This document shows, one piece after another, positions 9,801 through 46,200 of a DNA stretch of 64,000 bases (its first letter is position 1; each line of letters opens with the position of its first letter). The notes beneath the pieces were generated by a model that searched no databases, had not been told where the DNA came from, and saw only the letters and a program-made list of their open reading frames with translations. The translations under genes and the position numbers were made by a program. Source of the stretch: Pavona decussata (lineage: Eukaryota). The stretch lies in the NCBI GenBank assembly GCA_977016875.1, contig CDRNST010000166.1, positions 2,046,001 through 2,110,000 of the forward strand, written 5' to 3'.

Positions 9801-12800
9801 GGAAAAACAACAGGAACAGAGATTTCAATCAGAGAGGGATGTACAACTGGCCCGGCATGGTAATGGCGGACAATGAAGCCGGGTACTGGATTATTGTTAT
9901 ATCCAGATCGAACAACATATTAAAACATGTTGCTTTCTGAACGTTTTCTTCACACTCAGACAAACGGAATGAAAAACAACTTAGCCCCTTTTTCAAGTCG
10001 ACTTTTGTGGTTATCACCACTTCGTGGAGGATGTTGTCTTATTTTGCGCGCAATGTATTTTATATTAACATTGAGGTTATTCTTAACGTCGATCACTGCT
10101 GTCTCCCGTGTCCCTAACCTTAATTCTCACTAAAACACACATAATTTTGTCAAACATGAAGTCATATGAAAAAGACAAAAAGGCCTGTTTTATATGAAGT
10201 ACCCAAATTCAGGGTTAGGTGCATTTTTGGACATAAGTGTCTCTCTAAACACGACTTGTTCACTTATCGTGCTACACAAGGCAGAAAAATAACGCTTAAC
10301 CGCATCACTGTATGGCGGACCAAAAATTTTATCCTACATGAGTAGTGAGTTAGTTGTGGACAATTATGGAAAGCAATTGGCTGCAGCCTTGAAGTAAAAC
10401 AGTTTGGGATTATTTGCATTTTTGGTTAATCAGAATTGAGTGCCATTTTCAAGTACATCCCAAAGACGGAAAATTTAGAGATATCCTTACCAAGCACAAT
10501 ACAATCAGCTGTTGCGTTTGTTTTTCCTAAGTAGTTTTGAGCTTCGCAAGTGTATTTGCCAGAATCACCAGCTCCAACTTTGAGGATCACTAGTGACCCA
10601 TCTGCGTCCATCATATAGCTTTCGTTCTTTCCATATTCGATAGCTACACCATCTTTGAACCATCTAAATCTTGGATAGGGTTCTGCCAAAGGTTTGCAAG
10701 GTAACCGTGCCTGGATACCCTTGAATAGGTAGAACGGTCCAAATGACACGAGTTCGAAGGAAGGCTTCGAGGCTGGGAAGAAAAAGACAATTGTCAAAAA
10801 ATTGCTGCCAAAGAGTTACCCTTCTCAGACTCATTACATTAATGCTTCACCAAAAGTGAACAAAGCGCTGTTTGGTTGTACTGAAACAGGAAGCTCTGAT
10901 ATAAAAGGTCCAGGACTAGCTATTCTAACCTGAAGTTATCAATCAACCATCAGAGTGTGAATACCCGTGAAGCAACTGCGTCTTTTCTATGACCATTGTT
11001 TTTTGAGGAATAAATCCTAATCAAGATTTTAAAAACGCAATATTTTATATTGCTCTAGTGATGTTTTGCTACTGCTTAGAAATTTCGAGGCATTTATTTC
11101 ATAGCGGAAGTCAACGTGTAATGACTAAAAGACAAGTCTTTTTTCGTTTCTTTCTACGCGTAGGTATGTTAACAAAGTGAGGGCGCGAAGAGGAACTAGT
11201 TTTAGCGATTGGAACTGTTGTCTTGAGAATAGGGCGGTTTCCAATTCAGTGTCGTAAAACCATAACCAAAGTAATTACTCTGACCAATCGTAACAGATGT
11301 AAACAGCACAATGAACCAATCAGAATTCGAAGCAAATACGCGTTACCGGCGTCAAGCGCGGGAAAGCGCGTGCGGCCAAAAAACGATTGGTTTTGGTTAG
11401 GATTTCCATTGGTTGAGAAAGTGGCGCAGGTTGCTTTTAACCAATCACAGAAAGTAGTAATGTAAAACCAAAACAATCGCGAAGTTACTTTCGACACTCC
11501 ATTGAAAACCGCTCTATGTCGGGACAAAGTATCATTTTTGATAGCAAGCAAGAATTTACCACTACATGTACTTGACTAATCAAACTCCGTATACCCTCAC
11601 GCAAAAAAGTAAATTGTGAAAATTCGATCGTGCTGGTAAATTCCATTTTGAGTAAAAGTGTATAAAAAAAACCTTAATCAGAACAGATTTGCCAATGTTG
11701 TTGGTATTGGTTGGGGTTCATGCGTTCATACATTCCCCAGGTTGTAATTTCCACCACAAGTTAACTGACTTGTAAAAGTGCCTTGAGCACTGACTTACCA
11801 TTAACCTCAATCCTCAACACAGCTTTTTTTCCATCCCCGGCACTGTTGAAGGGGACACACGAATACACACCACTTCCTTGAAGTTGAAGATGGTAAATAC
11901 CACTGGTATTACTACCAAGTAGTTCCTGGTCACGGTAGAATTTGTATCCATCGGCATCTGGATGCGAAAACGTTGTACAATTGAACTTGATGGAGCTGCC
12001 AAATTTAATAGGTTTGGTGATATCTGCGTTGACTGATAGCTTTGTCTTTTCAGGTTTGACTGGAAAATATCAAAGTAAAAAATATATTTAGGGAACTACA
12101 TTACTATTGAGAAAGTGTTTTGTCATTAAGTGGTAACCATATTGAACCTAAATACTGGCGTATAAATAACGTGATCACCACTGTTAAGGTCATCATCATC
12201 ATTATCATCTTCATCATAACAACGTGATACGTGAGATAAGGGGAAAAGAATCAGGACTTACAATGTACATCAAGATAACTGCTAGCATTTGCGGTTCTGT
12301 TTAAGCCATTCTCTGCTGAACACCAGTAATCTCCAGATTGGCTCCTGTGCGCTCGGAAATTTAACGTGTTTCCAGTACCTACAGTCATCCCATCTTTCAT
12401 CCATGATATCTTTGGATTAGGGTTACCAATGGCAGAACAATGAATTGTTGCTACGTTGCCTTCGATAACAGTCTGATAACTGGTCTGTATCGTCACGTCT
12501 GGTGAAACTAAAAAAAGTTACATTTACAATAATTAGTTGCTGGCATGACGAAAATTCGTAGAACGTGAGATTACGACTTAATTCCAACTGAACGACCAAA
12601 ATGTAGGTCCTTAAAACTGAGGGGAGTATATGGCCTCCTTAAATTATCATCTAGCTTTAGTAGAACCCTTTTTTCATTCTCAAATTTTGTTTACTGATGT
12701 CTAGGATAGAAATGGATATTGGGCGAAGGTCTTTCCTTGTCCTCTTAGCTATATAGATAAAATGGTTATTACTTATTGTTCAAATTCTTTCTTTGAAACT

Positions 12801-15800
12801 CGGTTGACTTGATCTCATCCCAGCGTGTCATCTTCACTCCCATGGCAGTGTCCCTTTAACATGACATAACACGATATAGATGGGCGATAAACTCAAGGCT
12901 GTATAAAGGATTAAGAACAACTTGTATCTACCTTGGTGAAGTCAGAAATTGAAGGCTTATTTGTCCTCGCCTTAGCAAAGGAGCAAACAGAAATTAATTT
13001 TAAATGCAGTGTGTCGTCCACAAATTTGTAAGAGTTTGTAGTTTGGTATATCTGCCAACATCATTTTTTGAGGACGACTGTAAAAAGTGCTGATTTTGCG
13101 AGTCTGGACACCTTCAATAATCATGTCTCCGTTTCGAGTGGTACTCTTTGGTCAGTTGGACGACAGCCACCCAAATGCATAGGTCGTCATTACTATCCCC
13201 ATCACCAAAACTACCAACCGAGTCCATGTATTTGACCAGGACTGTGACATGAAAAGGAACAAGACTAAGATCCCGACAAGGACAAAGGCCATTTCCATAA
13301 ACACCAACAGGACTTACGACTATGACTGATTGATCATTATCGCCATGGATATCGTTATTGCCCACATAAATGTCTTTTTCACACCAAAGAAAAGGATTTG
13401 ACACTTACACTGTACATTTAGGTAAGCACTAGCATTGACAGATTCACCCAAGCCATTGTCAGCTGAGCACCAAAATTTTCCAGATTGGTTCCTGTGAGTT
13501 GTGACACGCAGTGTGTCTCCTACACCGACAGTCTTTCCATCTCTGGTCCAAGTGATGCTGGGAATAGGGTTACCAATGGCAGTGCAATGGAATGTGATTT
13601 CATCGCTTTCTCGGACTGTTTTGTCAATCGGAGTAGACGTGAGACTTGCTGGAACTGACAGATTAATAAAAAACAACAACCGCGTTACATTCTGTGTCGC
13701 ACTTTAGCTATAAAGCAGTCTCAGAATTGAGCAGTTCAAGATTAGACTATAACGTGTACCTTTTAGAGTAATTTTTCAATTCCACCCAATAGAGTTTTAT
13801 ATTATGGACTAATTAATATTTTAGATCGTACTTTCGAGGGCATTTCAGTTGTTGGTAGATTTTCGTTGAATAAAAACGTTTTAGTGGTATTATATAAACT
13901 GCAAGAATCTTTTTCCTTTTCTTGACAAGCAAAAGGTTATGCACGATGTTGTGGGGACGAAATGAAGAGCATAGTGCCTTTAAATAAGGTAAACAGGCCA
14001 CTACGAGCTTAAGTAGGCCACTATGGCGGAGCTTAACCCGTTTGTATAGCGTGGAGGAGTATTGCTCCATCCCCCTGGGTGGCTAGTCCATCGCAGGGTT
14101 ACCCCTAGCATTATGTCGCCAGTACCCATTTACACACCTGGGTGAAGAGACGCTCTAATCACCACACCACTGTGTCTCCCTTTATGAAAATAGTCATTAA
14201 ATGTTTGATAGTGACCTTAGAATCACAATTTATTCCAACCACTGATCTAAAAGGATACTTGTGCGAGATTTATACTCGGGAAAAGTTGAATTTATATTAC
14301 CTGTTTGATGACTGAATTTAAATGTTATCATTTCAACCTTTACCCACTGATCACAATCTCATACAACAGGATAAAGACCAGCTTTTCAGATTGAATCTCT
14401 GACATAAATCAGCACACATTTCTCTTACTTCAAGTAAACAACGCCTTAGTACTTACATCTTACGTCAAGGAAGGCGCTAGAGTTGATGAATTTTTGAATA
14501 CCATTCTCGGCAGAACACCAATATTGGCCCGACCGACTTCTTGATGCTTCAAAGCTCAGCGTATTTCCAGTACCTAGTGTCTTTCCATCTTTAGACCAAG
14601 TTATGTTAGGAGTTGGGTTTCCAATGGCAACGCAATGAAACGTTGCCATGGTACCCTCCATGACAGTCTGGTTTGATGGTCTTTTAGTCCAACTTGGTGA
14701 GTCTACAAATTGGAACACAAATAACTTATTTGAATCAAATAAAATTGTTTAGTCGAGCAGTTCGATTCTTATCATTAATTTTGTTATGGCGGCAAATCAT
14801 CTGTATTTCTGTTTGCTATTATGTTACTCATTTACCGCAGCCCTTCTTTTTCATGCAGCATTCACTAATTCTCTGTATGGAAGCCTTAATGTACAACTGC
14901 AGAGTTCCCCAAGCCTTTGTCTTGGTTGTCCTAACGATTTCTTCAAGAAAGTAACGGAATGCAGAGAGCACCCACTAATAACCTACCCTCTGCGGTCTTC
15001 AGATTGAAAGTCCTATGGATGGGCTTTTTACTATGATGCTAGCACATTAAGATTTTTGATTACGGTTATGTAAAGCCCGAGAAACGTAACTAAAGTAATC
15101 GGTACTTATTTTTACACTTTATAGGTAAACAGTTGTTTAATACTTACATTTCACTTCAAGATGAGCACTAACGTTGATAGACAAGCCCACGCCATTCTCC
15201 ACCGAACACCAGTATTTTCCAGAATCATTCTGGACTGCTTTAAAGATCAGAGTTTCTTCTGAGCCCACAGTTTCCCCATCTTTAATCCACTTAATCCTAG
15301 GCACAGGGTTACCACTTGCAGTGCAATTGAATACAGCATCCGAGAATTCATTGACTGTTTGATCCGCTGGCTTAGTTATTAAATGTGGTGGAACTATAAC
15401 AGGAAATTGTAGTCAATCAATTATAGTTGTAACGGCCTATTTAATTACATAGGTATGTGCGGCCTCAAGCGGTCCGATTCTCTTTGGTCAGAAATAGGTT
15501 ATATTACAAAAGTATAAGGGGTTGTTAAGTCTTCTGAAATATGGTATCTAAAGTAACACATTTTGTTGGAAATAAGGCTAACGTTTCCCCACTTGAGCTA
15601 CACAAGCCCTTCCAATAAAATTTGCGGGGTTCCCTATATCGCCTTGTACGGTTGCCAACATGTAGTCACTATTGTAGCTTGCTCGGTAGTTTAAGTCTCT
15701 AATCGGAAAAACAGATTTTTATGCAATGGTTAATACATACACTGAACATCAAGATTGGCACTAGCATTGACAGTTGAATCCAGGCCATTCTCAGCTGAAC

Positions 15801-16185
15801 ACCAGTATTTTCCAGAGTAACTCCTTTTGGCCTCCAAGTTAAGTGTTTCTCCTGTGCCCACAGTCTTTCCATCCTTAATCCATGTTATATTTGGAGCAGG
15901 GTTTCCTGTAGCAAAACAATGAAATGTTGCCATTGTACCCTCTGTGAGCGTCTGATCAGCTGGTGTCGTCACTAAACTTGGGCCAACTAACAAGAAAAAC
16001 AAAAATCAGTTACTTAAGAAAGTAGATGTCCATCCAAACAGGGCCCAATAAACAGTAAGAACGCGACGACATGGCCACCTTATTTGTGTACCGTAAACTA
16101 AAGGTTTGTCAGCTTTCTTTATGGTAGTACGCCAGCATGTCTGCCACGCTACTGCCATTGGAACCTGTAGGAACTTACTTACATT

Positions 16186-16232
<47 letters not shown>

Positions 16233-19200
16233 CATCATCATCAATCCTTAGCACTCCCCGGAGAGCATAGGGCGTCCACCACTGCACGCCACCTTGCACG
16301 ATTCCTTGCTGTCAAATCCGCGATATATATTTGATCATATGTAACGTCGGTTTTCTGCTTAACAACATCATTGGAGGCAAGGCTAGTAAAAGAGTTACAC
16401 TTAAATTTTTTTAACTTACACTGAACATCAAGGGAAACACTTGTAATATTTGCATCGATTTCATTTTCCGCGAAACACCAGTATTTTCCAGAATCGTTTC
16501 GCTTGGCTTCCAATCTCAGGATTTCCTCTGTACCTACAGTCTCTCCATCTTTAATCCACGTTATGTTAGGTGTTGGGCTGCCTTTAGCGCTACAGTGGAA
16601 CGTGATTTGTTCACCTTCTCTGACTTTTTGATCAGTTGGTGTTCTTGAAAAACTGGGTGGAACTGCAAAAAAAAGGTAAATATTCAGTTACGTTTACTTA
16701 CTTTTTCAGAAGGAAATGACGTACTAAGGCATAATACCCTAACATTTGTTAGAGAACGTGATCACACAACAGATAAGTAAAGTTGGCACATGCATGGTAA
16801 CGTTCCTTAAGTTTGCAGAAATGATTAACATATCAAACTGTTCACGAGAATTGGAATTCTTCTTACAGCTGACATATGAATGTCAAATATACCTCGCTTA
16901 GTTTCAAGAAATCAAATCCAGCACACGTCTACTCTTCCAGCAGTTTGAGTCAAATTGGCTCGCATGCGTATACTGAAGACAATATGCACTCTTAGGATAT
17001 ACATTCCATGGTATACCGCTTTTTAAAAACACCGCATAACTAGCTATAACTAACCGCTAGTAAATATCTTACGGTTTTGCACTTACACTGCACATCGAGG
17101 ACGGCGCTAGCATTGCCAGCTGGTTGTAAACCATTGTCCGCTGAACACCAGTATTTTCCAGAATGATTCCTGAATGCTTGGAAGCTCAGTTCCTCTCCTT
17201 CCGCCACAGGCATGCCATCTTTACTCCATGTTATGTTTGGAGCTGGGTTGCCGATGACAGAACAGCGGAATGTTGCTATCGCGCCCTCAATAACTGTTTG
17301 TTGTGTTGGATGTATTGTCGAACTTGGCGGAACTGCAGCAAAAATCATAAAAGCAATTAAGAGAATTGAAAATCTTTTTACAATATCCATGATCGTATTT
17401 CAAGACAGATGGCTAACGTTTTTAAAAGTAGCCCTCGCAAATTGTTTGGCAAATATCATTGATAGCAATGTTTAGTTTTGTGGATCCTTACTTCCCGATA
17501 ATTTAAGTCAAATTGTTAGATAAGTATACGGTACGAAATCCATGATGATATCTTCAAATGCCCTGTGCAATTCTCCTCAAATGTATGACATCTTTTTACA
17601 ATATCCATGATCCTATTTCCAGACAGATAGCTAACATTTTTTGAAAGTAGCCCTTGCAAGTTGTTAGGCAAATATCACTGATAGCAAAGTTCAGTTCTGT
17701 GAATCCATACTTCTCGATAATTTAAGTCGAACTGTTAGATAAGTATACGGCACGAAATCCATGATGATATGTTCAAATGCCCTTTACAATTCTCCTCAAA
17801 TGTATGATGAAGTGTCAACATACAAAGGAGCCTATACCAACCCCCTTTTGGTCAATTACTGATTTCACCCCACCCTCCCGACCGGAAAAAAATATTAAAA
17901 TAAAGAAGAAGTTGCGACCAAGTCCACCAATCGTTTAAGCCACGGTGCTCTTTTAGGCGATCATTCAAATGATTAAAAATACAAAACTACTGCAACAGCG
18001 TCAAACTTGGCAGCTGCTTTTGTCTCGATTAGAAAGATGTTTGAGAAATTCAGGTATCGAAATCTTGCATTGCTTTGGGGAATGATGGTAATCCTAATCC
18101 TGTACCTATCTGTACTGTTGTTCACCTGATCACAGTTTAGATGCAAGAATATTAAAACTTACACTGCACATCAAGTTGGATACTAGCGTTGATATTCACA
18201 CCCAGTCCATTCCCTGCAGAACACCAATATTTTCCAGAATCATTTCTGTACGCCGTTAACCTGAATGTGTCCCCTGTGGCTATGGTTTTTCCTTGTCTGT
18301 ACCACGTTATCGTCGGAGTTGGGTTACCAGTGGCATCGCAATGGAATATGGTATCATCACCTTCTTTGACTGTTTGATCAACTGAAGTTGATGTAAAACT
18401 TGGTGGAACTGTCAAGCAAACAAACAAAAAAAAAATAGTTTTGGTCGTAGTTTATCAGGACCAACAATTTTAACTACGTCAGAGCCACGAAAGATTTAGA
18501 TAAGGAAGACCCAAGGAAGTTGCAATTTTTTCCTATTGTTTTCGCATTGGACTGATAGGCCAGGGATGTAATAGTTTTGTATTATTATAGGCGAAGCGTT
18601 AAAAACGTTTAATGCCTAAGTCACGTTGTCTGAGCACGCACACCGGATTAATCCTAAATAGGGATTTTAAATTTGGAATTCTCGTGACCAACAGCAGCAG
18701 CAACACAATATGAACGAAATGCCCAAATTAGCTTTAATAGGCTTATAGTAGACCAGTCACCCTATTGTCATTGAACCAATAAGGAGTCTACACTTCAGTA
18801 AGCGCCCCCCTTTACAGAGGACGTTTTACTGAAGATCAATGGAAAATTAAGGAAGGTATTGTGCAAACAACCCGGTGCAAAACTTAGATAATTAACATGA
18901 AGACTGCATATACCCTGCCGGATAATAGTTAGAGAATACCCATTGTGACCACAATGATTAGAAAAACCCGTAGACAAACTGTTTAACTCTTAATTATCTT
19001 AGCAGAAAACGAAATAATTTTAATTGGAAAACAACATAATTAGGCCGCATCAGAAAATTTCTCCCTTCTTTTGTCACGGCCCGTGGCATCGTTGCCTATC
19101 AGTGCATCGTTGCCTACCTGTCTTCGAAAACAAATTGTTACGTAAGCAAATATACACTCACATTGGACATTTAGATAAGCAATTGCTTTTACAGTTGCGT

Positions 19201-22200
19201 TAAAGCCATTATCAGCTAGACACCAATATCTTCCAGAGTCGTTCCTTTTCGTGACAAAGGAAAGTGTGTCTTCTTCACCCACAGTCTTTCCATCCTTTAT
19301 CCATCTGATCTTTGGAGTTGGGTTTCCAGTCGCATTACAATGAAATGTTGCCATGGCACCCTCGATCACGGTCTGGTTAGTAGGCTGCATGTCCAAACTT
19401 GCTGAATCTACAACAGTTAAAGAGTAGAATTACACATTATGGTTGGGATATGCATGTGGCTCTCCTTAGCAATATCTCTAAGACATAATGGGAGTCTTAC
19501 ATTTTTTACAAAAATTGAAAACGATTTTCTTTTAACTTTTGCTTGAATGTTTTATTTCAATGCGAGTTTTACGTGCCCTTCGACAACAAAATCCAGGATG
19601 GTAGATTACTACAGGCCAGCTTTGTAGAGCTGTACACGATGATATCATTCTAACTCACATCACATTTTATGGACACGTATCCAGTGTAAGGCATAATAGT
19701 TAATACTGAAAAGTCAATGGGGATAGCTTTCACTGTACAAAAGTTGTCGAACTTACATTGAACATCAAAGGAAACGCTAGTGTTGACAGTTTTGCCTATT
19801 CCATTATCCGCTGAACACCAGTATACTCCAGAGTGATCTTTCCTAGCTTCAAAGCTCAGTTTTTCTCCTGTAGCCACAGTATTGCCATCATTAGTCCAGG
19901 TTATGTTTGGCACAGGGTTACCAGTGGCATTACAGGTAAACGTAACCTGATCCATCTCAGTCACAGTCTGATCGAAAGGTGTGATAGTAAAACTTGGTGG
20001 AACTAGAAATTAAAATGTGAAAAGAAAGTTGGAAATCAGTTCGTTACGGGTGGCATGGCCAACGGTTGTCAATGTAACTTGTAACATGACTAATTGATTA
20101 AAAATCAATCAAAAGAGACTTGGATAACTCATGCATATTAATGCAGCGAGAAACTGTTTATGTTATAACACTGACAATACTGTTCAAGGGTAATGCAAAG
20201 AATAGTCGGCGAGTTGAGCCAACTTCGACAATTTTTTTTTTTTTCGCCGAATTTTCACAGAGGTGGGAAATGTATTGCAACAGTACGTTGCTCTCTCCCT
20301 TTTATGGGGACACAAACGTTAGTCTCATGATCACTCTGTACCAACAAGGGAAAACCTCCAACCACACATGACCGTCATCCGTAAAGTAACCATTGCCAAA
20401 TTAAAACAAGGTTGTCGTTCGTACTCAGTCATTCTCATGAGCCAAATTTACAATTAGCATGGCTTCGAAACCTCAGAGTTACTCTATTCCCGTCATAATC
20501 CATTTCCATTTCCCGAGCAAGCAGATGGGCTACAAAAACTTCACGTTTCGTAATGATTTCAATATGTGTTTACCCTTGTGGATAGAGACAAATCGATAAG
20601 AACATTGAAGAACTTCACCCTTTTGACAAGAAAAAGGATCAAACTGTACTCTTTACTTCATGTCAACGTAGCTGAGACCATAGTATTTGTGCATGGACAT
20701 ACATAAGCGAGTACTTTCCCATTCAGCGTCATACTTACACTGGACATCGAGGTAAGCACTAACGTTGGCCGTACCAATGAGACCATTATCTGCGATGCAC
20801 CAGTATTCTCCAGACCGATTCCTGACTGCGTCAAACGTTAATGTTTCTCCTTCAGCCACAACTGTGTTATCTTTGATCCATTTTATTTCTGGTTCAGGGT
20901 TACCAGACGCAGTGCAGTGAAAAGTTACTTTGCTGCCTTCAGTGATGGTCTGTTTACTTGGCGTTTCAGTCAGAGTTGGAGTAACTACATGAAATAAGAT
21001 ATAATAGTACATAAATGGAATGTCGTACAACGAGAAGAAGGTGTTACTGATACTCTCAAGACTACGTGGTTCGTCTCTATTTTCTGTAACATAAAGCAAC
21101 TTATCCCACTGCTTCATCATCTTGATCGAATGCTAGTCTGCGGCAATTTGTTCAGGTAATTTTCCGTACATTCGTTCCATGGTATCTATGAATGTACTTA
21201 AATTATTTGGAGATCAACAATACGGAGTAACCTTTGTTGTCCCACGAAATAACACAAGGTGATGACCAGCTTGAAGTCGTATTTCTTACGATCTTCCAAA
21301 GCCTGATAAAATGTCGACACTCTTGCAACTATATCACTGCGGTTCCTCTCATGTAAAGTTTCCGTTCAATCTTAAATGTTCATGAAATAAAAGAAATTTT
21401 CAATGTACTTACACTGCACATCAAGGAAAGCACTTGCACTGATAGCCAATCCCACTCCATTCTCAGCTGAACACCAGTATTCTCCAGATTGATTCCTATG
21501 TGTTTCAAAGTTCAGTGTGTCTCCAGTACCCACAGTCTTGCCATCTTTAGTCCAAGTTATATTTGGCTCAGGGTTACCAGCAGCAGTGCAGGTAAATGTA
21601 GTTTGCTCCTTCTCAGTCACGGTTTGATTTGAAGGTGTGCTGGTGAAGCTTGGTGGAACTAAAATGATAACATTAAATCACAATAAGAAATAATTGAATG
21701 CACGCAGATCGCGTGGGATATAAATTGTGCTCTGCTTTGAGCACTTGATAGCTCAGCTATCCAGTGCTTAAAGCAGAGCACTATAAAGTAGTTATAGCCA
21801 AGTACCAAGCCGCTAGAAAGTGCGCTATTGTTTTACTGATGAGGCCTAAGAAAGAGGAAACAACTGTCCATGGCTACCACTAACTGCGTGATTTGGCTGT
21901 GTGTATCCTTAAGGTGCTGGCCAACCGCAGAGCTATGCATTGTGACCTTTGCAGGCCTTGCGGATTAAATGGTCTTTTTTGTTTTTAAACTTACACAGTA
22001 CATTGCCAAAGTTCATTGGAGGATGTCTCTCTTATTCCATTTAGGAATCGTGCTCTTGTATCGGTCGTTTAATAATTCGAAGAATTTTTGACGAGACACG
22101 AAAGAAAACCGTGGCCGATGTTCAAACCCATACACGGTCGTCATACACGTCCTTCGGTAAACCTTGTCATGGAATGCTCAAGACAGCATAGACAATTGGC

Positions 22201-31200: not shown

Positions 31201-34200
31201 ACACAAGTATTCTCCAGATTTATTCCTATGTGTTTCGAGGCTCAGTGTGTCTCCAGAACCCACATTCTTCCCGTCTTTAATCCAAGTAATATTTGGCGCA
31301 GGGTTACCAGTAGCGGTGCAGGTAAAAGTGGTTTGCTCCTTTTCAATCAGGGTCTGATTTGAAGGTGTGCTGGTGAAACCTGGTGGGACTACAAGGTTAA
31401 AATAAAATGATAGTAACTCTGAACTCGTGGTATACACATTTCATACTATAGGGCTGTGCTTTATGCACTGCAGAAGATATGCTGTGGTTTACACTGCACA
31501 GCGAGTGCTAGCTTTACTAGGTAGGATTTCTAGCATTAGCAGCTGGTTGTAAACCATTGCAGCAATACTTTTGAGAACAATTGATGTATGTTTGAAAGCT
31601 CAGTTTCTTTCCTTTTTCACATTATAGCAATAATAGTGTTGCTTGAGCGCATTTTCTTTCTAAATATTCGAATGCGCTTGTATGATTAAAAGTAAACTTA
31701 ACAAACAGTATCCACAGCAAGCGACCATTACTAGAAATCTATACATTAAACTAAATTATTCATTCTTCACGGATCTTAAGTATTTCCACTGGGTAACTGT
31801 CACTAACATCAGATAATTTAAATCCTCCACTCCCGTCAACAGCGATTGAACCAATGACTTTCGTCTATATTCCACTGCAACTATCTAGAAATACAAATAA
31901 ATACACCTGTAAATATCTACTCACATTTTACATTGAGATAAGCAATGGCTTTGACGGTTGCATTAAAGCCATTATCAGCTAAACACCAATATCTTCCAGA
32001 GTCGTTCCTTTTTGTGACAATGGAAAGTGTGTCTTTTTCACCCACAGTCTTTCCATCCTTTACCCATCTGATCTTTGGAGTTGGGTTACCGGTAGCATTG
32101 CAGTGAAATATTGCCATGGCACCCTCTATGACAGTCTGGTTAGTGGGCTGCATGTCCAAACTTGCCGAGTCTACAACAGTTAAAGATGACGGTCAAAAAA
32201 TTGCGGTTAGAATATACACGTGGAAAAGAACGACTAATATTATCATTCCAACCCATCGACTCCCTTTAGAGACGTTTATTCAGTATTTCCGTCATACACA
32301 TCACGCCAATCATATGTTTGTTACTTGCTTTAAATTTTTACTTTTTTTGTTTGACACATCGGTTCAATGCCTTGTGTAGCTTTGCCTCGAAAGCAAAATC
32401 CAGGAAAGTGGATTTCAGCAAGCAGCCCTTTTACAGCTGTGAGTAACAATGTCATTCCACCTCACATCACATTTGTATGTACGCCTATTCAGTGTTTAAA
32501 ACTTTATGGTTTCAACGTTCCTTTAGACAGTCAACGGTGACAGCTGTCAACGTGCAGAGGCTTACAAACTTACACTGAACATCAAGGAAAACGCGGGTGT
32601 TGATACTCTTGTCTATTCCATTTTCTGCTGAACACCAGTATACTCCGGAGTTATTTTTCCTAGCTTCAAAGCTCAGTGTTTCTCCTATACCCACAGTCTT
32701 GCCATCTTTACTCCAGGTTATGTTTGGAACGGGGTTACCAGTGGCAGTGCAATTGAACGTAATTTGATCCTTCTCAGTCACGGTAAGATCGGAAGGTGTG
32801 ATAGTAAAACTTGGTGGAACTAGAAATTATAATATGAAAAGAAGTTAGAAATGAGTACGGAGTGAATGAAATGGCCCTTTGTTGATGCATATAACGTCTG
32901 CGGTAACTGATTCCTCAGATATCGGCAATCCACGAGACTTGGATAACTCATGTCAGAACTAAGCGAAAAGATCTTCAGAATTAGCATTACTCAGAGTTAA
33001 AGGAATTTAGCCCATTCTTTTCATAATTGGTTGGCTGCTTTTTTTTTTCCGATGCTGTGAAATAACTAAAAAAATGTCAATTTTCTGAAATATTTCAGTA
33101 CTTTATTTACCTTTCTAGGGACGTCAACAACTCTTCATCATGTTCACAACCAAAACAAATGAAACTGTATTCTTTATTTCATATCAAACGGATTAAAAAC
33201 AATAACATTTGAGCTTGCACATACAGAGGCACATCCCCCCCCCCTCCCCCCGAGCTTCTCCATATCTTGTAACACAACCTTAACGTCCTACTTACACTGG
33301 ACATCAAGGTACGTGCTAGCGTTGGCCGTGTCATTGAGACCATTATCTGCGATGCACCAGTATTCTCCAGATCGATTCCTGAGTGCGTCAAACGTTAATG
33401 TTTCTCCTCCACCCACAACTATGTCATCTTTGATCCATTTTATTTCTGGTATAGGGTTACCAGACGCAGTGCAGTGAAATGTAACACTGATGCCTTCAGT
33501 GATGGTCTGTTTATTTGACGTTTCAGTCAGAGTTGGGGCAACTGCAGAATAATAAGATTGAAAAGTACAGCAATGACATCGTAGAAGGAGGAAAGGGCCG
33601 AGACCTGCAGTGCAAAGCACCACTTATATTCTGAAGGTTAGGTGGTTCATCCCTACTTTCTGTAACATAGCGGGAATAAGACCATTGCCTTTTCACTCTG
33701 ATCCCAGATGCAAGTCCATCACTAGGTTCTTATTATTTTGTACGGAGGATTATTTGAAATAATCTTCCGTACATTAGTTTCATGGTACCTATGAATGCAC
33801 TTCTGTCCTCAATTGTTCAGAGATCAACAACATGGAGCAGCTTTTCTTGACCCAATAAATAAAACAGTGCGATGACCAGAGTGGAACCAAATTTTTTACG
33901 ACCTACCCAAGCCTAATTAAACGACAGACACCCTCTCATCACAACAGCACTGCGTATGCTCGCATGCAAACTTTCCATTGTATCGTAACTATATATAAAG
34001 TAAAAGAGAGTTTACACGGCACTTACGTATACACTGCACATCTAGGTAAGCACTTGCGTTGATAGCCAATCCCACTCCATTCTCAGCTGAACACCAGTAT
34101 TCTCCAGATTGATTCTTGCGTGTTTCGAGAGTCAGTGTGTCTCCTGTACCCACAGTCTTCCCGTCTTTAATCCAGGTAATATTTGGCGCAGGGTTACCAG

Positions 34201-37200
34201 CAGCGTTGCAGGTAAATGTAGTTTTCTCCTTCTCTGTCACGGTCTGATTTGAAGGTGTGTTGGTAAAACTTGGTGGAACTAAAAAGATAAGATGACAGTG
34301 ACAAAAATTAATGGCGTCCTAAATTCGTGTGATATACATTTTATTCTATACAGCTAAGGTCTAAGCGATTCATAGCTAGCTTTAGCTAAGTTTGAAACCA
34401 ATAAAAGGAATATGCTACGGTTTGCACTGAATATCGAGAGCTAATATTGGCAAGTGATTGTTATCTTAATCGCCTGAGAAGACAACTAAATAATTTAATT
34501 AAAAAACAAGATTATTTGGCCGCTTGATCAGAGATTCTGCTTCCCTGTGACACAGCGTTTGAGAAAGGTGCTTATGAGTTAGTATTCAACGGTGATTGAA
34601 CCAATAAGATTTAAGTATGTTCCACTGCACCTATCTAGGAATGCAAATAATTACAGGCGTAAATATATACTCACATTTTACATTCAGGTAAGCAATTGCT
34701 TTGACAGTTGCGTTAAAGCCATTATCAGCTAAACACCAATATCTTCCAGAGTCGTTCTTTTTTGTGACAAAGGAAAGTGCGTCTTCTTCACCCACAGTCT
34801 TTCCATCCTTTATCCATCTGATCTTTGGTGTTGGGTTACCGGTGGCATTGCAGTGAAATGTTGCCATGGCACCCTCTATGACAGTCTGGTTAGTGGGGTA
34901 CATATCCAAACTGGCTGAATCTGCAACAATTAAAAATTAGAATTAGAAATTTCAGTTGGATAAAGCGCGTGGGAAAGAACTACTTACATGACTCCCACTC
35001 TTCGACTCTCTTTAGGGAGATTTATTCAGTATATCCCTGAGACATATGTTTTGCCAATGATATATTTTTTATATATATTAAGAGCGTTTCTAAATTTGTA
35101 CTGTTTTTTTTTTTATTTGTTTTAGTTTTTACGTTTCGGTTCAATGCCTTTTGTACGTTTGCTTCGAGAACCAAATTCCAGGATACTGGATTTCTGCAGG
35201 TGGGCTTTGCTCAGCTGTACATAAGATAACGATTTTAATCTACCCCTAATCACATTTCTCTGGGTACCTATCCACTGTTTACGGCTTTATAGTTTCAAGG
35301 AATCCTTAGTCAGCATACAGCAGCGGCGACAGCTGTCAATGTGCAAAGGCTTACAAACTTACGCTGAACATCTAGGGAAACGCTAGTGTTGATACTTTTG
35401 TCTATTCCATTATCCGCTGAACACCAGTATACTCCAGAGCGATTTCTTCTAGCTTCAAAGCTTAGTGTTTCTTCTCTACCCACAGTCTTGCCATCTTTAA
35501 TCCAGGTTATGTTTGGCGCAGGGTTACCAGTGGCAGTGCAAGTCAACGTAATTTGATCCTTCTCTGGGACAGTCTGATCGGAAGGTGTGATAGTAACAGT
35601 TGGCGGAACTAGGAATGAAAATATGAAACAAAAGTAAGACATTAGTGCACAGTGGACTAAATGCCCCTCCGTTGGCGAACATAACATCTACAATTACTAA
35701 GTCATCGAAAGCAATCAATGCAATTTGGATAACTCATATTGGCGCTAAAAGAAACTTTCGTTTCCAGACTTTCAATCATATATGACCGACAGCTATAAAG
35801 CGGCCATTGTCGATTGTTGTTCGTTGTCCACTATTCTTCAGAATTAGGATGACTTCGAGATATAAGATTGAACACAATTTAGCTGTGTCTTCATTGTTTG
35901 CGCTTTTTCTTTTCACGAGCCAGCGGAATGAATAAAAAAACTTCCACTAGGCATTCACTCTTCTCTGATCAAATTAAAGCGAGAAAACCATTGAAGAACG
36001 CTTCGTCCTTTCCAGAACAACAAAATCAGACTGTACTCTTTATTTTATATCAAACTGAATGAAACTGATAATGTTAGGCCGGTACGTACACAAGTGAGTA
36101 TCTCCCATCCCTTGTGTCTATGTCTTGGAACAAAACCTACAGCGTCATACTTACAGTGGACATCAAGGTAGGCGCTTGCGTTGGCCGTGTCATTGAGACC
36201 ATTATCTGCCATGCACCAGTATTCTCCAGATCGATTCCTGAGAGCGTCAAACGTTAGTGTTTCTCCTTCACCCACAACTACTTCATCTTTGGTCCATTTT
36301 ATTTGTGGTACAGGGTTACCAGACGCAGTGCAAAGAAATCTCACCTTGCTGCCTTCAGTGATGGTCTGTTTACGTGGTGTTTCAGTCAGAGTTGGAGCAA
36401 CTACAGGATATAAGGTATAACAGTACATCAAGATCATATCGGGCAAGGAGGAAAACGCCGAGATCTGCAGTGCAAAGTGTCACTGATATTCTCAAGACTG
36501 CGTGGTTCAGCTTTATTTTGTAACATAAAGGGACTAAGACTATTATGTTTTGACCCCGAACGGGATGTTAGTCCATCGCAAGGTGCTCAGCTTTTTGATA
36601 ATCTAATTTTCAGAACATTATTTGCACAATCTATAATATGGAATAAGGTTTGTTGCTGGACAAGAAATAGCACAACGTAGTAAAGAGCTTAACTGAAACA
36701 CCTTCTGTGTGTCCTTCGAAGGCACGATAAAAAGTCGCATGCCATCATCACAAAATAAATGCGTTGATTCGTGAGGGAGCTTTTGGTGACATCAAAAATG
36801 ATCATGAAGTAAAAACGAATAACTTTTCACTGTACTTACACTGCACATCAAGGTAAGCACTTGCACTGATAGCCAATCCCACTCCATTTTCAGCTGAACA
36901 CAGGTATTCTCCAGATTGATTCCTATGTGATTCGAGGCACAGTTTGTCCCCAGAAGCCACAGGAATCCCATCTTTAGTCCAGGTTATGTTTGGCGCAGGG
37001 TTACCAGCAGCGGCGCAGGTAAATGTGGTTAGCTCCTTCTCAGTCACGGTTTGATTTAAAGGTGTCCTAGTAAAACTTGGTGGGACTAAAATGATAACAA
37101 AAGATCACACTAAGACGTTTGCGGGTTAAATACCCCTCTGTTTTTAAAAGCATTTCCTCAGAAACTTAACTTATAACACGTTACTCAGTGTAGCGATGTC

Positions 37201-40200: not shown

Positions 40201-43200
40201 CAGTGGCAGTGCATTGGAATGTTGTGTTATCACCTTCAATAACCGTTTGGTTGGTTGGCCATATGAGTAAACTTGGAGCATCTGTAGGAGGAAAGAATTG
40301 TTCTTAGGTTCCACGATTTTTCCACCAGTTCTCAGCTTAACTTGATTTGTCATTTAACCACCAAGACATAAACAAAAGACAAACGGCACACATTGTTTGA
40401 TGAAAATTTCGCAATTTGAAACCTGTCTAGTGTAATTGATTGCATTTGAAATTAGGCTGACTTTTACATTGGTGCCTTGGTAGCTGATAGGTTGAATAGA
40501 AGCGGATCACAAACTTTCTGCCAGATTGAATATGGGTATTGGAAGAGAGAAACAAACTGTACTGTACTGTATGGTATTCTGTATTGCATCCCTTTTTGAT
40601 GATCCTGACGAATAACACGACGTTCTTACTTACACAGGATGTTAAGCGTAGCACTGGCATTGACAGTTACGTTAAGGCCATTTTCAGCTAAACACCAGTA
40701 TTTTCCTGTATGATTCCTCAGCGTCTCAAGACGCAGTTTCTCTCCATCACCCAATACCTCCCCATCTTTGCTCCAGGTTATCTTAGCAGTTGGGTTGCCT
40801 TTGGCAATGCAGTGCAGTGTTACAATCTCTCCTTCAATGGCTTCCCGATCCTCTGGAATCGTTGTCAATTGTGGTGGAACTGCGAAAGACACGAGCTTTT
40901 TACTTTTTTATTTAAACAAATATTTATAGATGTCCAATTCAGCAGGACTGGGGCTAGATTCACGCAGCCCTCAATTAAGATGTATCCTTAACGCTGTTTT
41001 TTTTTTTTTTTTTTTTTTAACAAAAGACTATTATTATAGTGACATGGGGCTATTTTCAAGTACAATACTAACTAAAGGATATTTAGAAAAAAAAATTAGC
41101 TTTAAGGATCCAAAAAATAAATTTTAGCGTGCAAGCTTTCGACTCCTTCACGAAATCGTATCCTTAGTATTTTTTATCATTATATAAACACCAGTGAAAT
41201 ACCACGAAAACATATCTTTACACGTGAAAATAACATGTTATCTTCACACGTGAAAAGATCACCGCTGCTATGGTTACATAATAAATCGTGCCTTTTGCAA
41301 TGATTTGGTATTTCATTGGTGTTTATATAATAGACAGAACATTACATGGCCGCTTGGAGATACGAAATTTTTCTTCGAGTGTTAAAAAATATTTCACGAG
41401 TGAGCGCAGCCTAATTTTCATCCTAGTACTATACACTAAGAATTGTGGCCTAATTTTCATCCTAGTAGTATACATACTGAATTTGTCCTAATTTTCATCT
41501 TAATACTATACACTATGAATTTTGGCCTAATTTTCATCCTAGTAGTATACACTATAAATTTGGCCTAATTTTCATCTTAATACTATGCACTATGAATTTT
41601 GGCCTAATTTTCATCCTTGTAGTATACACTATGAATTTGGCCTAATTTTCATCTTAATACTATGCACTATGAATTTTGGCCTAATTTTCATCCTTGTAGT
41701 ATACACTATGAATTTTGGCCTAATTTTTATCCTAGTAGTATACACTGTGTAATTTGCATAGTGTATATTCTATACACTATGCTTTTTGGACTTATTTTCA
41801 TCCCTTAACAAATAAAGAAGCCTCGACTGTGCTCTGTTCTGTTGTAAAGCACGCAGGAAGCGGCGAGAGCACGAAAGAAGTGTAGGGGGAAACACGAGAC
41901 GTAGTCGAGTGTTTCTCCCTACTTGTTGAGTGCTCTAGCCGCTTCCTAAGTGCTTTACAACAGAACAGAGCACAGCCGAGGCTTCTTTATTTGTTTTATG
42001 ATAAAGAATTCTTTTATTTCCCCTAGCATTCACCCTCATTTTCAAAACCAACTTCATTTTCCGAACGAACAGATCTGGCGTCAGCGTGCATCTGTACTCT
42101 GATAAAGCACGCTAAAATAAGCCAATCACAATCCTTGTTAGAATGTTTCAAATGATTTGATTGGATGAACAACACGACAGCCGTCAGACATGTCAAAACA
42201 AGGCATCAAAGTTTACAAACTTTGCTCAGATCGCTCAGTTCGAATGTAACGCCAGTAGCGTTAGCGCTTCTTCAGTTTTCCCTTTCAAAAATCAGGATGG
42301 AAAAGTAAAATGTTCATTGAAATCAGGTGGATTTGTGGCGCGTGAAAATCTGGACGTCATCAACATGGCAATTCAAAAACAAACTGCTTTAAAGCTTGCG
42401 GCCGGTAATAAATCAACTGCTGCGCTGTGTTTTGTGAATGAACAACAGTCGAATTCACGGGAGCAAGAGGAGTGTTCGAACTGTTGACACCGTTAGGAAA
42501 TGGCTGCTGTGACTGCTGTGGCTTCCCACTCAATGCTCCAGAGAGGATATCTGAACAAGCTGTAAGTTGTTCACTCGAAGGGCGAGCGTTGTAATTTCTG
42601 AGGCTTGCTTCATTGCGGTGAGCGGAGGTGGCCATGATGCGGCGTGATAGCACTTGCACCAAAAATGTAAGGATCTTGTAAGCTTATATACTTGTGTATT
42701 CCTTAGCTAATTAAATTTTGAGTTCTCTCAATTTTTTGTTTGATCTTTTTGTACGAGAATATAGCTAACGAGCGTTTAGGGACCTTTTAACACTTGCTTA
42801 AGCTTGTGACATTTTTACACCTTTCGTTCTAAAACTTGAGCTGTCCATTTTATGCTATCTTTGGTGTTTATCGTCTCTGCCTTCGATGTAATTTCGACCA
42901 TTTCGTCGGTTGACATGACTGTTTGCAAATCTCTGTTTGTTTATATTTCTACTTGGCTCTGTGTTTTAGTCGCTAACTTCTTCGGAAACCTCACTTTCAA
43001 TCACCGTGTTATTTGTACTGTTTTTTTTTTTTTTTTTACCTTATATGCGCACAGGATGGTCTATGGCCAGCTCGTTTACGTTTTCTAGGTTATNNNNNNN
43101 NNNNNNNNNNNNNNNNNNNNNNNNNNNNNNNNNNNNNNNNNNNNNNNNNNNNNNNNNNNNNNNNNNNNNNNNNNNNNNNNNNNNNNNNNNNNNNNNNNNN

Positions 43201-46200
43201 NNNNNNNNNNNNNNNNNNNNNNNNNNNNNNNNNNNNGGGAATTTCACAAACGGCTTGATGGCGTGACACCGTTGCTCCGTGCATCTGTACTCTGATAAAG
43301 CACGCTGTTTCAACCAATCAGCGCGCGATCGAAATTTTATTATAAAATACTATACACTATGAATTTTGGCCTAATTTTCATCCTAGTACTATACACTATG
43401 AATTTTGGGATAATTTGAATCCTTATACGATAGACTAAGAATTTAAGACTAATTTCCATCCTAATACTATAGACTATGTATTTTGGACCAGTTTTCATCC
43501 TAATACCATACACTTTGAATTTTGGCCTAATTTTACTTCTAATACTATACACTATGATTTTTGGACAAATTTCCATCCTGATACTATACACTTATTTTTG
43601 GCTTTTGATGGCTTTTATGGAGTGATGGATGTGTTGCTATTTAAGTTTAGACTAATTTTTACCCCTCTACTATTCACTCTAAATGACGGCGGTGTTATTA
43701 TTAGTTTAGCTTAATATTTAAGCTAATACTATATACTCGAATGGCTGTTTCAGACTAATAATGGTCTAGTAGTCTAGTCTAGTCTAGTCTAGTCTATTTT
43801 TTATTCTAATACAATGCACTCCAATTTTCGTCATTTTATAGTTTTTGGGGAGCGATAGCTGGGTTGGTATAAGTTTAGACTAACTATTATGCTAATACTA
43901 TACACTCTAATTTTCGATTTTTATAGTCTCATGGGGTGAAGGTGGTGTTGGTACTATATTAGACATTTTTATCCTAATATTTTACACTCTAAATGATGGT
44001 GGTGTTGGGATTAGTTTACATTAATTTTTATCTTAATACTATACACTCTAATTTTCGATTTTTATAGCCTCGTGGGGTGAAGGTGGTGTTGGTATTAGAT
44101 TAGACTAATATTTATCCTAATATTTTACACTCTAAATAATGGTGGTGTTGGGATTAGTTGACACTAATTTTTATCCTAATACTATACACTTTAATTTTCG
44201 CTTTTTCTCGCTTTTTTGGAGTGTTACTGGTGTTGGTATAAGTCCAGCCTTTTTTTTTTTTTACCCTATTACTTTACAATCTAATTTTTGGCTTTTTATA
44301 GCTTTTAGGGGGTGATGGTGTGGTTGGTTTTTAGTTTAGACTTATTTTTCATCCCAATACTATACACTCTTATTTTAGGCTTTTTCTGGCTTTTTTGAAG
44401 AGATGGTGGTATTGGTATAAGTGTAGCTTATTTATCTTAATACTATACGCTCTAATTTTTTGGCTTTTTATAGCTTTATTGGCCTAATGGATGTGTTTGT
44501 ATTAGTCTAGCATCCTACTAGTATAGTACTTATCCCACTTCTTTAAGAAGGCTAAATAAAGAACGTTTGTTAACTATCGAATAGCACCAGAAGGTTGTCG
44601 AGAACAAGACAGGAACTGGAATAGAAAACAGTATCATAAAGTCGATTCTAACCTTGTACATTTAGCAATGCACTGACGGAATCCGTGCCCTTGAAGTTTA
44701 CAGCCTTGCAAGTGTAGTTTGCTGCGTCTTGGCTGTTGTCTACCTTCTTTATAACCAATGTACCATCCTCCTCCAGCTTGTAGCGGCTGTTCTCGTCATA
44801 CGTTAGTAGATCACCTTCTCTGTACCACTGGAATGAAGGGCGAGGTGCGGCCGATGGTTGACATGGCAACCTGGCTTCTTTCTTATTCAGCACATTAAAG
44901 GGACCAAATTGGACGTCATCAAATGATGGCTTCCAAACTGAAGGTACGAAAATACATTGACATAAAATCGAACTGTCTGACTAAACGACTCAATAACCTG
45001 AAAGAGTGTATGACACCCGTCCCCTCCCCTTCCCAGCTTCCTTGAGAAATTCAAGAGTAATAAGACTTGTAAGGTATACAGTGACTTCGAAGCTGTTTCC
45101 TCTAGAATCCACAAAATGTATGATAACGTCACATGACGTCATTAGACTTCGTTATCTCAGTACAGCTTCCATATTGGATTTTGTTTTTCCAGGCATCGAA
45201 AAATCAACAAAATTGATTCAAAAGTTATCCAAACTACCGAGAGAAACACTGAAAATGCTAGCAAACAGACAATTTTAAAACAAAACCTCGAAATCTGTCA
45301 TTAAAACCAAAAATCTTGTATAAAATGCGGCTGCCAAGCAAAATATCAAATTACGTGACCGGTAACATGTCATACTCCAATTTTCAAGATAGATTTCAAA
45401 AAAAGTTCAGTGGCAGTTTGTGGCTTCCTGCTTCCAACTTTTTTACTCCAACCCCAAACTTAATCAAATCTGAATTAATCATGCATCACTCTACATCACT
45501 AACTCAACGTTTTTGTTCGGTTTTCGAGATAAAGACATCCGCTTTGCGTCCTTTTAGGATGGACGATCCTAAAAACGATATAGAAAGTCATGCACCTCAA
45601 AACGAAAATTAATTATTGTGGATGAGGCCTTAACCAGGAAAGTTTGCTCCACCTTGTCTCACTCTATTCAAGAAAATGTATAAATTTGAAATAGAGAACA
45701 GGTTCAGTAGCCTAATTACTAAAATGCTGAGGAGGAGGGTTGACAGCGTTCCGCTGGATTAAAAGAGCGAGTTCAGTTGCTGACGTTTGAACGTCCAGTG
45801 GACAAAGTGTCACTTACCTAATACACTGACTGAGGTGAATGAAATAATCATTCCATGTGTATTTACAGCTTCGCACTGGTACATCCCAACTTCATCAAGA
45901 GTAACATCAATCAGATGTAACTTGTGGCCATCCAGGTTGTGATTTCTATGATCGTAGAAAAATATAACAAAAAGTAAAGCATCAGAGAGAAACAATAAAG
46001 AATTATTGTTCTCAAAGTCATTAACAATTCATGAAGAGAAAATGAAGGAACTCACTACCGTGAAGGAGGTTTGGAAAAGTGATCTTAATTATCATAAAAT
46101 TTGGTGAACTTTCACTTGGAATTTCTCCAAGAATTATTAATTGTTCGAGAAGCCACATCAAACGCTCGAAAGAGGTCTTCACCCGATGTTGAACTCTTTC

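Follow-up and report, generated by a model that had tools for sequence, protein, structure and literature searches.

Two Ig5-type exons bracket a long array of Ig exons in a probable giant L1-family adhesion gene of the stony coral Pavona decussata

Results and discussion

Members of the L1 family follow a fixed, well-known design in which six Ig domains are combined with FN3 domains and a tail that binds ankyrin. Cnidarian members have been reported (PMC10084454). A stretch of 64,000 nucleotides from Pavona decussata, referred to below as the window, very probably holds one giant adhesion gene of the L1/neurofascin family, which lies on the minus strand and is read from Ig1–4 to an L1-type tail. 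The exons would follow in the order Ig1–4, a first Ig5 (Ig5a), 36 compact sequon-rich Ig exons, a divergent Ig exon (LAST), a second Ig5 (Ig5b), Ig6, five FN3, a transmembrane (TM) exon and the tail. Assignment to the L1 family was based on the Ig and FN3 exons, the match of the tail to the Pfam family Bravo_FIGEY and the hydropathy of the TM exon.

All exons described here are on the minus strand. The head of the gene is represented by the open frames of Ig1 (51553–52005; Pfam Ig_3/I-set, with a 67% ortholog heading the gene in another coral, sp3), Ig2 (49482–49880; orthologs in sp1, 95%, and sp3, 70%) and the second half of Ig3 (48243–48572; orthologs in sp1, sp2 and sp3). The second half of Ig4 (45818–46028) ends on a donor at 45818 (TTAG/gtaagt) and its orthologs lie just 5′ of Ig5a in sp1, sp2 and sp3.

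At the membrane side, Ig6 (9496–9793) is delimited by the RNA joints 9793/10491 and 8958/9496, and in contactin-1 it matches Ig6 best, at residues 487–573. The FN3-1 exon (8619–8958; Pfam fn3) has its upper end from the RNA joint 8958/9496 and an approximate lower end. FN3 exons continue to about 2951, with open frames at 6609–6968, 6003–6308, 4738–5187, 3571–3870 and 2951–3259; orthologs of FN1–FN5 are present in sp3, sp4 and sp5, and Pfam fn3 was called on those from sp3. A TM exon with approximate ends (about 1400–1540), conserved in sp3, encodes a hydrophobic stretch followed by YRRWKRRRS. A hydropathy scan gave a hydrophobic window of 21 residues (mean 3.1) with basic residues after it. 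The predicted cytoplasmic tail, containing the L1-family ankyrin-binding region, is an open frame at 632–901. It scored 36.4 bits against PF13882 Bravo_FIGEY (cut-off 23.8, E 1.3e-8), and it is the only exon in the genome to match this family at E ≤ 0.001. The sp3 ortholog is 67% identical; its motif is SFVGDL, against SFIGDL in the window, and both lack the tyrosine of FIGQY. The six canonical Ig positions of L1 are all present, with the array, LAST and a second Ig5 added to them, and several FN3 domains separate the Ig part from the membrane.

The array (12262–40879) consists of 36 compact Ig exons of about 83 residues, each with 2–4 N-glycosylation sequons and all of phase 1-1. Their splice sites are uniform, with yAG/TTCCACCA-type acceptors and T/GTAAGT donors. 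The first array exon, A1 (40634–40879, phase 1-1), is delimited by its splice sites and has orthologs directly 3′ of Ig5a in sp2 and sp3. The array is closed by LAST (11799–12059; Pfam Ig_2), which is bounded by the RNA joints 12059/12262 and 10772/11799. The last donor of the array had been placed at 11766 in the original prediction; its correct position is 11799. Orthologs of LAST precede Ig5b in sp3, sp4 and sp5, and paralogs occur elsewhere in the genome, on contig C77 and on C217.

Ig5a (44653–44937) and Ig5b (10491–10772) are both phase 1-1 exons, and Pfam I-set was called on both (1.9e-13 and 4e-14). Each yields the peptide originally quoted for it when the minus strand is translated one base in. 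The ends of Ig5b coincide exactly with the RNA joints 9793/10491 and 10772/11799, while those of Ig5a are predicted from a canonical acceptor (ttcag/) at 44937 and a donor (/gt) at 44653. Orthologs of Ig5a are 97%, 91% and 69% identical, and those of Ig5b 61–96% in at least eight other assemblies. In a BLASTP comparison the two exons were identical at 39 of 88 positions (44%; 87 bits, E 3e-29, one gap), and in a search of every open frame on the window's minus strand they were reciprocal best matches (87 bits vs ≤39). Comparison with the contactins CNTN1/2 (7ol2, 8a0y, 9ba5) gave Ig5 as the best and near-equal match of both. Ig5a scored 36.8 bits with Ig5 of contactin-2 and at most 23.4 with any other domain; Ig5b scored 40.2 and 37.6 bits with Ig5 of contactin-2 and 38.0 with that of contactin-1, and at most 22.7 elsewhere. 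A PCQP-AAP stretch is common to contactin Ig5 and Ig5a, and G-K-[AT]-N-[SA]-T to contactin Ig5 and Ig5b. In neurofascin 155 the best stretch for both exons was residues 435–500. Judged domain by domain against vertebrate contactins, both exons are Ig5-type, and the original description of them as clear but old phase 1-1 Ig5 paralogs stands. Both are under purifying selection: dN/dS was 0.11–0.26 across the two exons (0.12 for Ig5b), with dS up to 1.9.

Splicing was followed in assembled contigs from three runs (X1, X3 and X10) of different studies, whose status as RNA is partly a guess. Such contigs lose rare variants and give no isoform ratios, and the longest covers at most four exons. They contain the minus-strand chain A35 > A36 > LAST > Ig5b > Ig6 > FN3-1, with joints at 13409<12507, 12262<12059, 11799<10772, 10491<9793 and 9496<8958. 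All five are CT..AC on the plus strand and hence GT..AG on the minus strand. RNA contigs also fall on array positions 14360–14559. The array is joined by RNA to LAST, Ig5b and Ig6, so it feeds into Ig5b. The 3′ side of the long form first proposed was therefore found directly, and its 5′ side, the splice from Ig5a to A1, is one that we infer, together with a single transcript from Ig1 to the tail, from exon phase, splice sites, synteny and the C77 paralog. Because the 39 exons from Ig5a to Ig5b are all phase 1-1 and appear to be spliced serially, the main product appears to have about 45 Ig domains vs 6 in the usual L1; 37 of the Ig exons (36 of the array plus LAST) are inserted between the two Ig5 copies.

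The same layout was seen in other corals. In sp3, contig ctg27488 (merged from six loci that overlap with 0 conflicts; 0 N) carries Ig1, Ig2, Ig3b, Ig4b, Ig5a, 53 array exons, LAST, Ig5b, Ig6, FN1–5 and the tail; with Ig1–4, the two Ig5 types, the array, LAST and Ig6 this form has about 60 Ig domains. As the order is contiguous in this gap-free contig, the two Ig5 copies do bracket the array within one gene, as had been proposed. Parts of the layout were found in three further coral assemblies; sp4 and sp5 have the array, LAST, Ig5b, Ig6 and FN3s in order. The number of inserted exons differs by lineage, 37 here vs 54 in sp3.

The genome contains at least nine Ig5-type exons. The closest relative of Ig5a is the Ig5 of C77 (63%), a paralog with Ig5, two array-type exons, a LAST-type exon and FN3-1, and without Ig5b or Ig6. 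Ig5b clusters with Ig5 exons from six ordinary-looking paralogs; four of these are on the same contig no more than 220 kb away. In the Ig5 tree, support is 100/97 for the Ig5a clade and 98/94 for the Ig5b clade, and (Ig5a, C77) splits from (Ig5b, ordinary paralogs) at 95/93. Forcing Ig5a and Ig5b together cost 5.4 lnL (AU p 0.066), which is disfavoured yet above rejection. The two exons are thus duplicates in the sense of old Ig5 paralogs, but the best tree does not make them a sister pair, since it places C77 with Ig5a. Their split predates the divergence of coral lineages whose orthologs are now only 60–70% identical, and appears to be no younger than the separation of this gene from the ordinary-looking L1-like paralogs. 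The order of the paralogs was left unsettled by the Ig1, Ig2 and FN3-1 trees.

The origin that fits best would be duplication of Ig5 within the gene, after which each paralog lost one of the copies. It is possible, though less probable, that Ig5 was never duplicated in the gene and that unequal crossing-over or conversion instead carried a block from one L1-like paralog to another. One partner would have resembled C77 (Ig5a type, array-type exons, LAST), the other an ordinary paralog (Ig5b type, Ig6). The affinities of Ig5a with the Ig5 of C77, itself followed by array-type and LAST-type exons, and of Ig5b with the ordinary paralogs favour such an exchange, as do the array-type and LAST-type exons at a third site (C217:406.9–409.0 kb) with no Ig5-type exon nearby. 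However, old in-gene duplication with one copy lost per paralog predicts an identical Ig5 tree. The Ig1 tree, in which a 97/98 branch unites C76, C77 and the ordinary paralogs apart from the window gene, misfits a simple fusion of a C77-like 5′ part to an ordinary 3′ part; the identity of FN3-1 to all paralogs is flat (44–49%), and the arrangement was fixed before the split of lineages at about 60% identity.

The two Ig5 copies could alternatively be alternative exons around an optional cassette, ordinary six-Ig L1s being made mainly or often by joining Ig4 to Ig5b or Ig5a to Ig6 and the long form being one of three products. Alternative splicing is common in Ig arrays of symmetric phase elsewhere (titin, Dscam), each of the junctions originally listed, the short ones included, is indeed in frame (split codons G/TT, G/CC and G/AG), and minor variants are compatible with the contig data. 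Nevertheless the two short isoforms predicted did not appear: in assembled contigs of the three runs, from which rare variants are dropped, the acceptor at 10772 was joined only from LAST (11799). Among the loose contig ends listed (79 more exist), none at 10772 or 9793 leads elsewhere. Contigs of the array exons are about as deep as those of Ig5b, Ig6 and FN3-1, and open frames with strong consensus splice sites have been kept across the 36 copies of the window and the 53 of sp3. A main role as an isoform switch is therefore unlikely.

An assembly gap (43094–43236) lies within the Ig5a-to-A1 intron, outside the exons and in an intronic satellite that is common to both flanks (43346–43602 and 41407–41810). 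The region is colinear with the uninterrupted intron of sp2, where the order is Ig4, Ig5a, satellite, A1, array and the satellite fills the whole intron without any exon; in sp3 the intron is 0.65 kb. That the gap, whose true size may differ from that in the assembly, fuses Ig1–Ig5a of one L1-like gene to the array, Ig5b and tail of another from the cluster of paralogs nearby is hardly credible and close to refuted, as gap-free contigs of two other corals run Ig4, Ig5a and A1 directly in series, one of these two holds the entire gene on 67 kb without N, the same satellite is found on either side, 44653–10772 offers neither Ig1–4 exons to begin a second gene nor FN3, TM or tail exons to complete a first, and C77 likewise has array-type exons right after its Ig5. 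The single gene originally assumed across this gap is borne out by the gap-free contig of sp3.

An Ig domain in a chain is about 4 nm long. The 37 inserted domains could thus form a stalk of about 150 nm, on which the L1 head (the Ig1–4 horseshoe plus Ig5) would be raised above the L1 base (Ig5, Ig6, FN3s and anchor). In the original proposal Ig5a would keep the Ig4/5 interface and Ig5b the Ig5/6 interface. As the two Ig5 copies and all exons between them have phase 1-1, it is conceivable that runs of the array are skipped, setting the reach of the Ig1–4 head at anything from about 25 to about 200 nm, while the Ig5 copies, as fixed adaptors, preserve the domain contacts of head and base irrespective of what separates them. 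This adjustable form is a speculative proposal and rather improbable. If true, corals would adjust a single adhesion molecule to different settings: narrow cell clefts, the mesoglea or the space between tissue and skeleton.

The gene shares Ig1–4, Ig5, Ig6, the run of FN3 domains, one TM segment and the Bravo_FIGEY tail with the L1 family (L1CAM, neurofascin, NrCAM and CHL1; Drosophila neuroglian; C. elegans SAX-7/LAD-2). That family has six Ig domains by definition and a FIGQY tail, whereas the coral gene has about 45 (about 60 in sp3), two Ig5-type domains and FIGDL/FVGDL. A literature search found no paper on an L1 form with such an Ig expansion and two Ig5 domains. The likeness to contactins assigns domain position only, as these have one Ig5, are GPI-anchored and lack the tail. 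Dscam1-type arrays likewise hold tandem Ig exons that resemble one another, within an IgSF adhesion gene of neural type. A Dscam exon specifies half a domain or a whole one and is picked singly, whereas the coral array exons are added up: RNA contigs connect neighbours with one another and with Ig5b, which is not the pattern of mutually exclusive choice. Titin, hemicentin and obscurin also have dozens of one-exon phase 1-1 Ig domains head to tail in lineage-variable copy number, but are intracellular or matrix proteins without the L1 head, the FN3–TM base or the L1 tail. An L1/neuroglian-like coral protein that reaches the skeletal organic matrix is the neuroglian-like protein B8VIW9 of Acropora millepora (PMC3748352). 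Likened by description only, its counterpart may be one of the ordinary paralogs rather than the giant gene.

Conclusions

Automatic annotation pipelines easily split genes of this kind or label them hemicentin-like. The difference between 37 and 54 copies and the truncated C77 paralog provide natural variants for probing the role of the putative stalk. The second Ig5 beyond the insert hints at how a receptor of many domains can take up a long insertion while sparing the contacts of adjacent domains. With both ends of the L1 design kept and 37 to 54 extra Ig domains placed midway, in several coral lineages and under purifying selection, this probable L1-family gene would show how far the design can be stretched.

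Results and discussion

Contig C166, which carries the window, belongs to an assembly of 602 Mb in 1180 contigs. On the minus strand of the window there is a long row of open frames for immunoglobulin (Ig) and fibronectin type III (FN3) domains. Pfam assigned the Ig frames to I-set/Ig_3 and found, on the same strand, an fn3 domain at 8619-8993 and the L1-family cytoplasmic region (Bravo_FIGEY) at 632-901 (36.4 bits; cut-off 23.8); a transmembrane (TM) exon lies at about 1400-1540, also on the minus strand. Taken together, these features indicate that the gene is a member of the L1/neurofascin family. Coral metatranscriptomes are among the RNA runs with this gene, which marks the organism as a coral. 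It has the tail, FN3s and TM of an L1 but breaks the six-Ig rule and lacks the tyrosine of the FIGQY motif. The tail motif at 632-901 is SFIGDL, and SFVGDL in its counterpart in another coral, sp3 (record 114572-114841), where the L1 standard is FIGQY, the regulatory tyrosine being missing from both corals. A second assembly gap (1009-1149), apparently intronic, separates the TM exon from the tail exon.

Exons were searched one by one. The tail exon, as query in an exhaustive representative search, returned six exon-sized fragments and no full-length L1. Word-index protein searches with single exons returned only exon-sized open frames of genomic contigs, spliced or named proteins being absent, and these matches served as handles for the DNA of relatives.

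The original prediction was that Ig5 is duplicated, with one copy, Ig5a (44653-44937), on one side of an array of Ig exons and the other, Ig5b (10491-10772), on the far side. The peptides given for both stretches were reproduced by translation, and the ends of Ig5b are exact according to RNA joints. The two exons share 44% identity over 88 residues and are mutual best matches in the window, at 87 bits where no other frame exceeds 39. When compared with solved structures, the best stretch for both was Ig5 of contactin-1 and -2 and of neurofascin 155. The best domain for Ig5a was contactin-2 Ig5 (36.8 bits; next-best domain 23.4), and Ig5b scored 40.2 and 37.6 bits with contactin-2 Ig5 (next-best domain at most 19.8) and 38.0 bits with contactin-1 Ig5 (next-best domain 22.7). 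Neither the array exons nor LAST, the exon that closes the array, showed an Ig5 preference. The specific per-domain scores of Ig5a and Ig5b confirm that both exons are of Ig5 type.

Between Ig5a and Ig5b lie 36 similar exons (A1-A36, 40879 down to 12262) and one unlike, Ig_2-type exon, LAST. Each of the 37 is preceded by a pyrimidine tract and AG, followed by GTAAGT or GTGAGT, and has phase 1-1; an array domain has on average 83 residues and 3.1 N-glycosylation sequons. The donor of LAST had to be moved from its first placement to 11799, and the cysteine of an apparent DVQCK motif was found to be intron read-through, the true exon stopping one base into the next codon. A reading of LAST as a divergent Ig6, by which an Ig5-Ig6 pair would have been duplicated here, was rejected, as the PDB matches of LAST are weak and unspecific (CD22, MALT1, contactin-4 Ig3). 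Derivation of the array from Ig5 was also rejected: the array exons are about as similar to Robo Ig3 as to Dscam Ig4 and neurofascin Ig3, and score no more than 21-39 bits against Ig5a and Ig5b.

At 19162-37085 four array-exon types recur in a fixed order, in about six repeats with 84-93% identity between units. The sp3 gene has more array exons, yet they include no one-to-one counterparts of these four-type units, and the expansion of the units in the window therefore looks lineage-specific. In a further coral, sp5, a single 351-residue open frame runs across several array Ig domains (L074:2366-3421, also L075:3077-4132); some array introns may have been lost there, or may be read through without a stop. 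The two sp5 contigs are probably haplotypes. An sp3 array intron (L036:161-841) holds a 226-residue open frame, probably a mobile-element remnant, of which an identical copy is found on an unrelated 8.7-kb contig (L038) that also bears array-type Ig exons.

RNA evidence was taken from assembled contigs over 8560-14559 of the window, from sequencing runs X1, X3 and X10 of different studies; the RNA status of several runs is a guess. On the minus strand, with GT..AG borders, the contigs join A35 (13409-13654) to A36 (12262-12507), A36 to LAST (11799-12059), LAST to Ig5b (10491-10772), Ig5b to Ig6 (9496-9793) and Ig6 to FN3-1 (upper end 8958). Array exons are thus spliced to one another and then into Ig5b, and the array is part of the gene with the L1 tail. 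Contig depth, a rough guide, was similar for the array exons, Ig6 and FN3-1.

It had also been proposed that Ig4 and Ig6 are joined through either Ig5 copy alone, giving two short isoforms. The exon phases allow this, but the RNA contigs lend it no support, as they join 10772 from LAST alone; over 8560-14559 no joint and no listed loose end linked other exons to 10772 or 9793. As the data are contigs, rare isoforms may escape. An exact search of JGI metagenome contigs for the predicted Ig5a-A1 junction gave zero matches, the collection probably containing no RNA of this coral. Run X6, a coral metatranscriptome, had matches in two intronic repeats alone, at 10.1-10.2 kb and 11.2-11.5 kb, and none in the gene. 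These repeats, on either side of Ig5b (10100-10240 and 11160-11560), reach contig depths of hundreds to tens of thousands in all RNA runs and are probably transcribed transposon families, outside the gene proper.

An assembly gap (43094-43236) lies inside the Ig5a-A1 intron. One satellite repeat flanks the gap on both sides (43346-43602 and 41407-41810), and in the coral sp2 the satellite occupies the entire intron on a gap-free contig (L033), in the order Ig3b, Ig4, Ig5a (87%), satellite, A1 (79%) and at least 12 further array exons. In the more distant sp3 (ENA ERZ25071797, ctg27488), 67 kb were walked with six overlapping loci, with no conflict and no N. The order there is Ig1, Ig2, Ig3b, Ig4b, Ig5a (68%), 53 array-type exons, LAST (77%), Ig5b (72%), Ig6, FN1-5, TM and tail. 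A paralog on contig C77 of the coral's own genome has array-type exons immediately 3' of its Ig5. The satellite shared with the sp2 intron, the order in sp3 and the C77 paralog are three independent lines which show that the two sides of the gap belong together, and a misjoin of two genes is close to excluded. The corals sp4 and sp5 also have the array, LAST, Ig5b (61% in sp5), Ig6 and FN3s in this order. We infer that Ig5a is spliced to A1.

At least nine Ig5-type exons are present in the genome; the paralog exons were taken from short search-result loci, and the paralog gene structures rest on hit coordinates. Six come from ordinary-looking L1-like paralogs with one Ig5 apiece, in five of which an Ig6 exon follows 1.6-4 kb beyond Ig5 (none was found for P3). 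Four of the six lie in a row on the contig of the window gene, 20-220 kb away. The ordinary paralogs (C166:1824429-2026444, plus strand; C134:606544-622505, plus; C134:871041-885515, minus) run Ig1, one Ig5, mostly Ig6, then FN3-1. No Bravo_FIGEY tail exon was detectable in them at E<=0.001, and some exons of P1, P3 and P4 contain in-frame stops.

The C77 paralog (C77:1277219-1287959, minus strand) is a short relative with Ig1-4, an Ig5a-type Ig5 (60-63% identity to Ig5a), a pair of array-type exons, one LAST-type exon (about 51%) and FN3-1. Ig5b and Ig6 are absent from it, and no counterparts of the later FN3s, TM or tail were found within 47 kb downstream. On the plus strand of C217, a LAST-type exon (50%) lies 1.8 kb beyond an array-type exon with 63% identity to the window's (C217:406899-408970), with no Ig5-type exon near the pair. 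This shows that the module also occurs outside L1-like genes, as part of a larger family of genes with Ig arrays. At C217:427758-467546 (plus), 20-60 kb beyond the pair, there is a very large array of Ig exons (about 45% identity).

As the tail-exon search gave no full-length L1s, the Ig5 tree, with 20 rows and 96 columns, was built from coral sequences alone, and the contactin per-domain scores stood in for bilaterian and sea-anemone Ig5. The tree groups the Ig5a orthologs (four rows, this coral and three others; support 100/97), the nine Ig5b orthologs (98/94) and the six ordinary paralogs (100/99), and it separates Ig5a and C77 from Ig5b and the ordinary paralogs (95/93). Both exons are under purifying selection (dN/dS 0.11-0.26, dS up to 1.9), which with the tree makes them old Ig5 paralogs, as originally suggested. 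A grouping of the two as sisters is disfavoured by the tree, although not rejected: with Ig5a and Ig5b constrained as one group, the log-likelihood falls by 5.4 units (AU p 0.066). The split is far older than the separation of the coral lineages compared, and probably goes back as far as the paralog family.

Two histories fit these data. In the first, Ig5 would have been duplicated within the gene long ago and one copy then lost from each paralog; this agrees with the Ig5 tree and also with the Ig1 tree, in which the C76, C77 and ordinary paralogs stand together, apart from the window gene (97/98). In the second, exon blocks would have been exchanged between paralogs, which suits the Ig5 tree just as well. 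The trees of Ig1, Ig2 and FN3-1 leave the paralog order unsettled.

Conclusions

L1s are reported from cnidarians (PMC10084454), and a neuroglian-like protein is present in the Acropora skeletal matrix (PMC3748352). A literature search turned up no account of an L1 that exceeds six Ig domains or that has two Ig5 domains. As in the tandem-Ig chains of titin and hemicentin, the Ig exons of the window gene are added up in series, unlike the pick-one arrays of Dscam.

The region is one gene, with an additive splice chain on its 3' side and an order conserved among corals. In the product, a head of Ig1-4 and Ig5a would be held off a base of Ig5b, Ig6, FN3s and TM by 37 heavily glycosylated Ig domains. 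An Ig domain is about 4 nm long, so the 37 inserted domains would add about 150 nm of reach, and the original idea that each Ig5 copy would preserve one native neighbour contact is reasonable.
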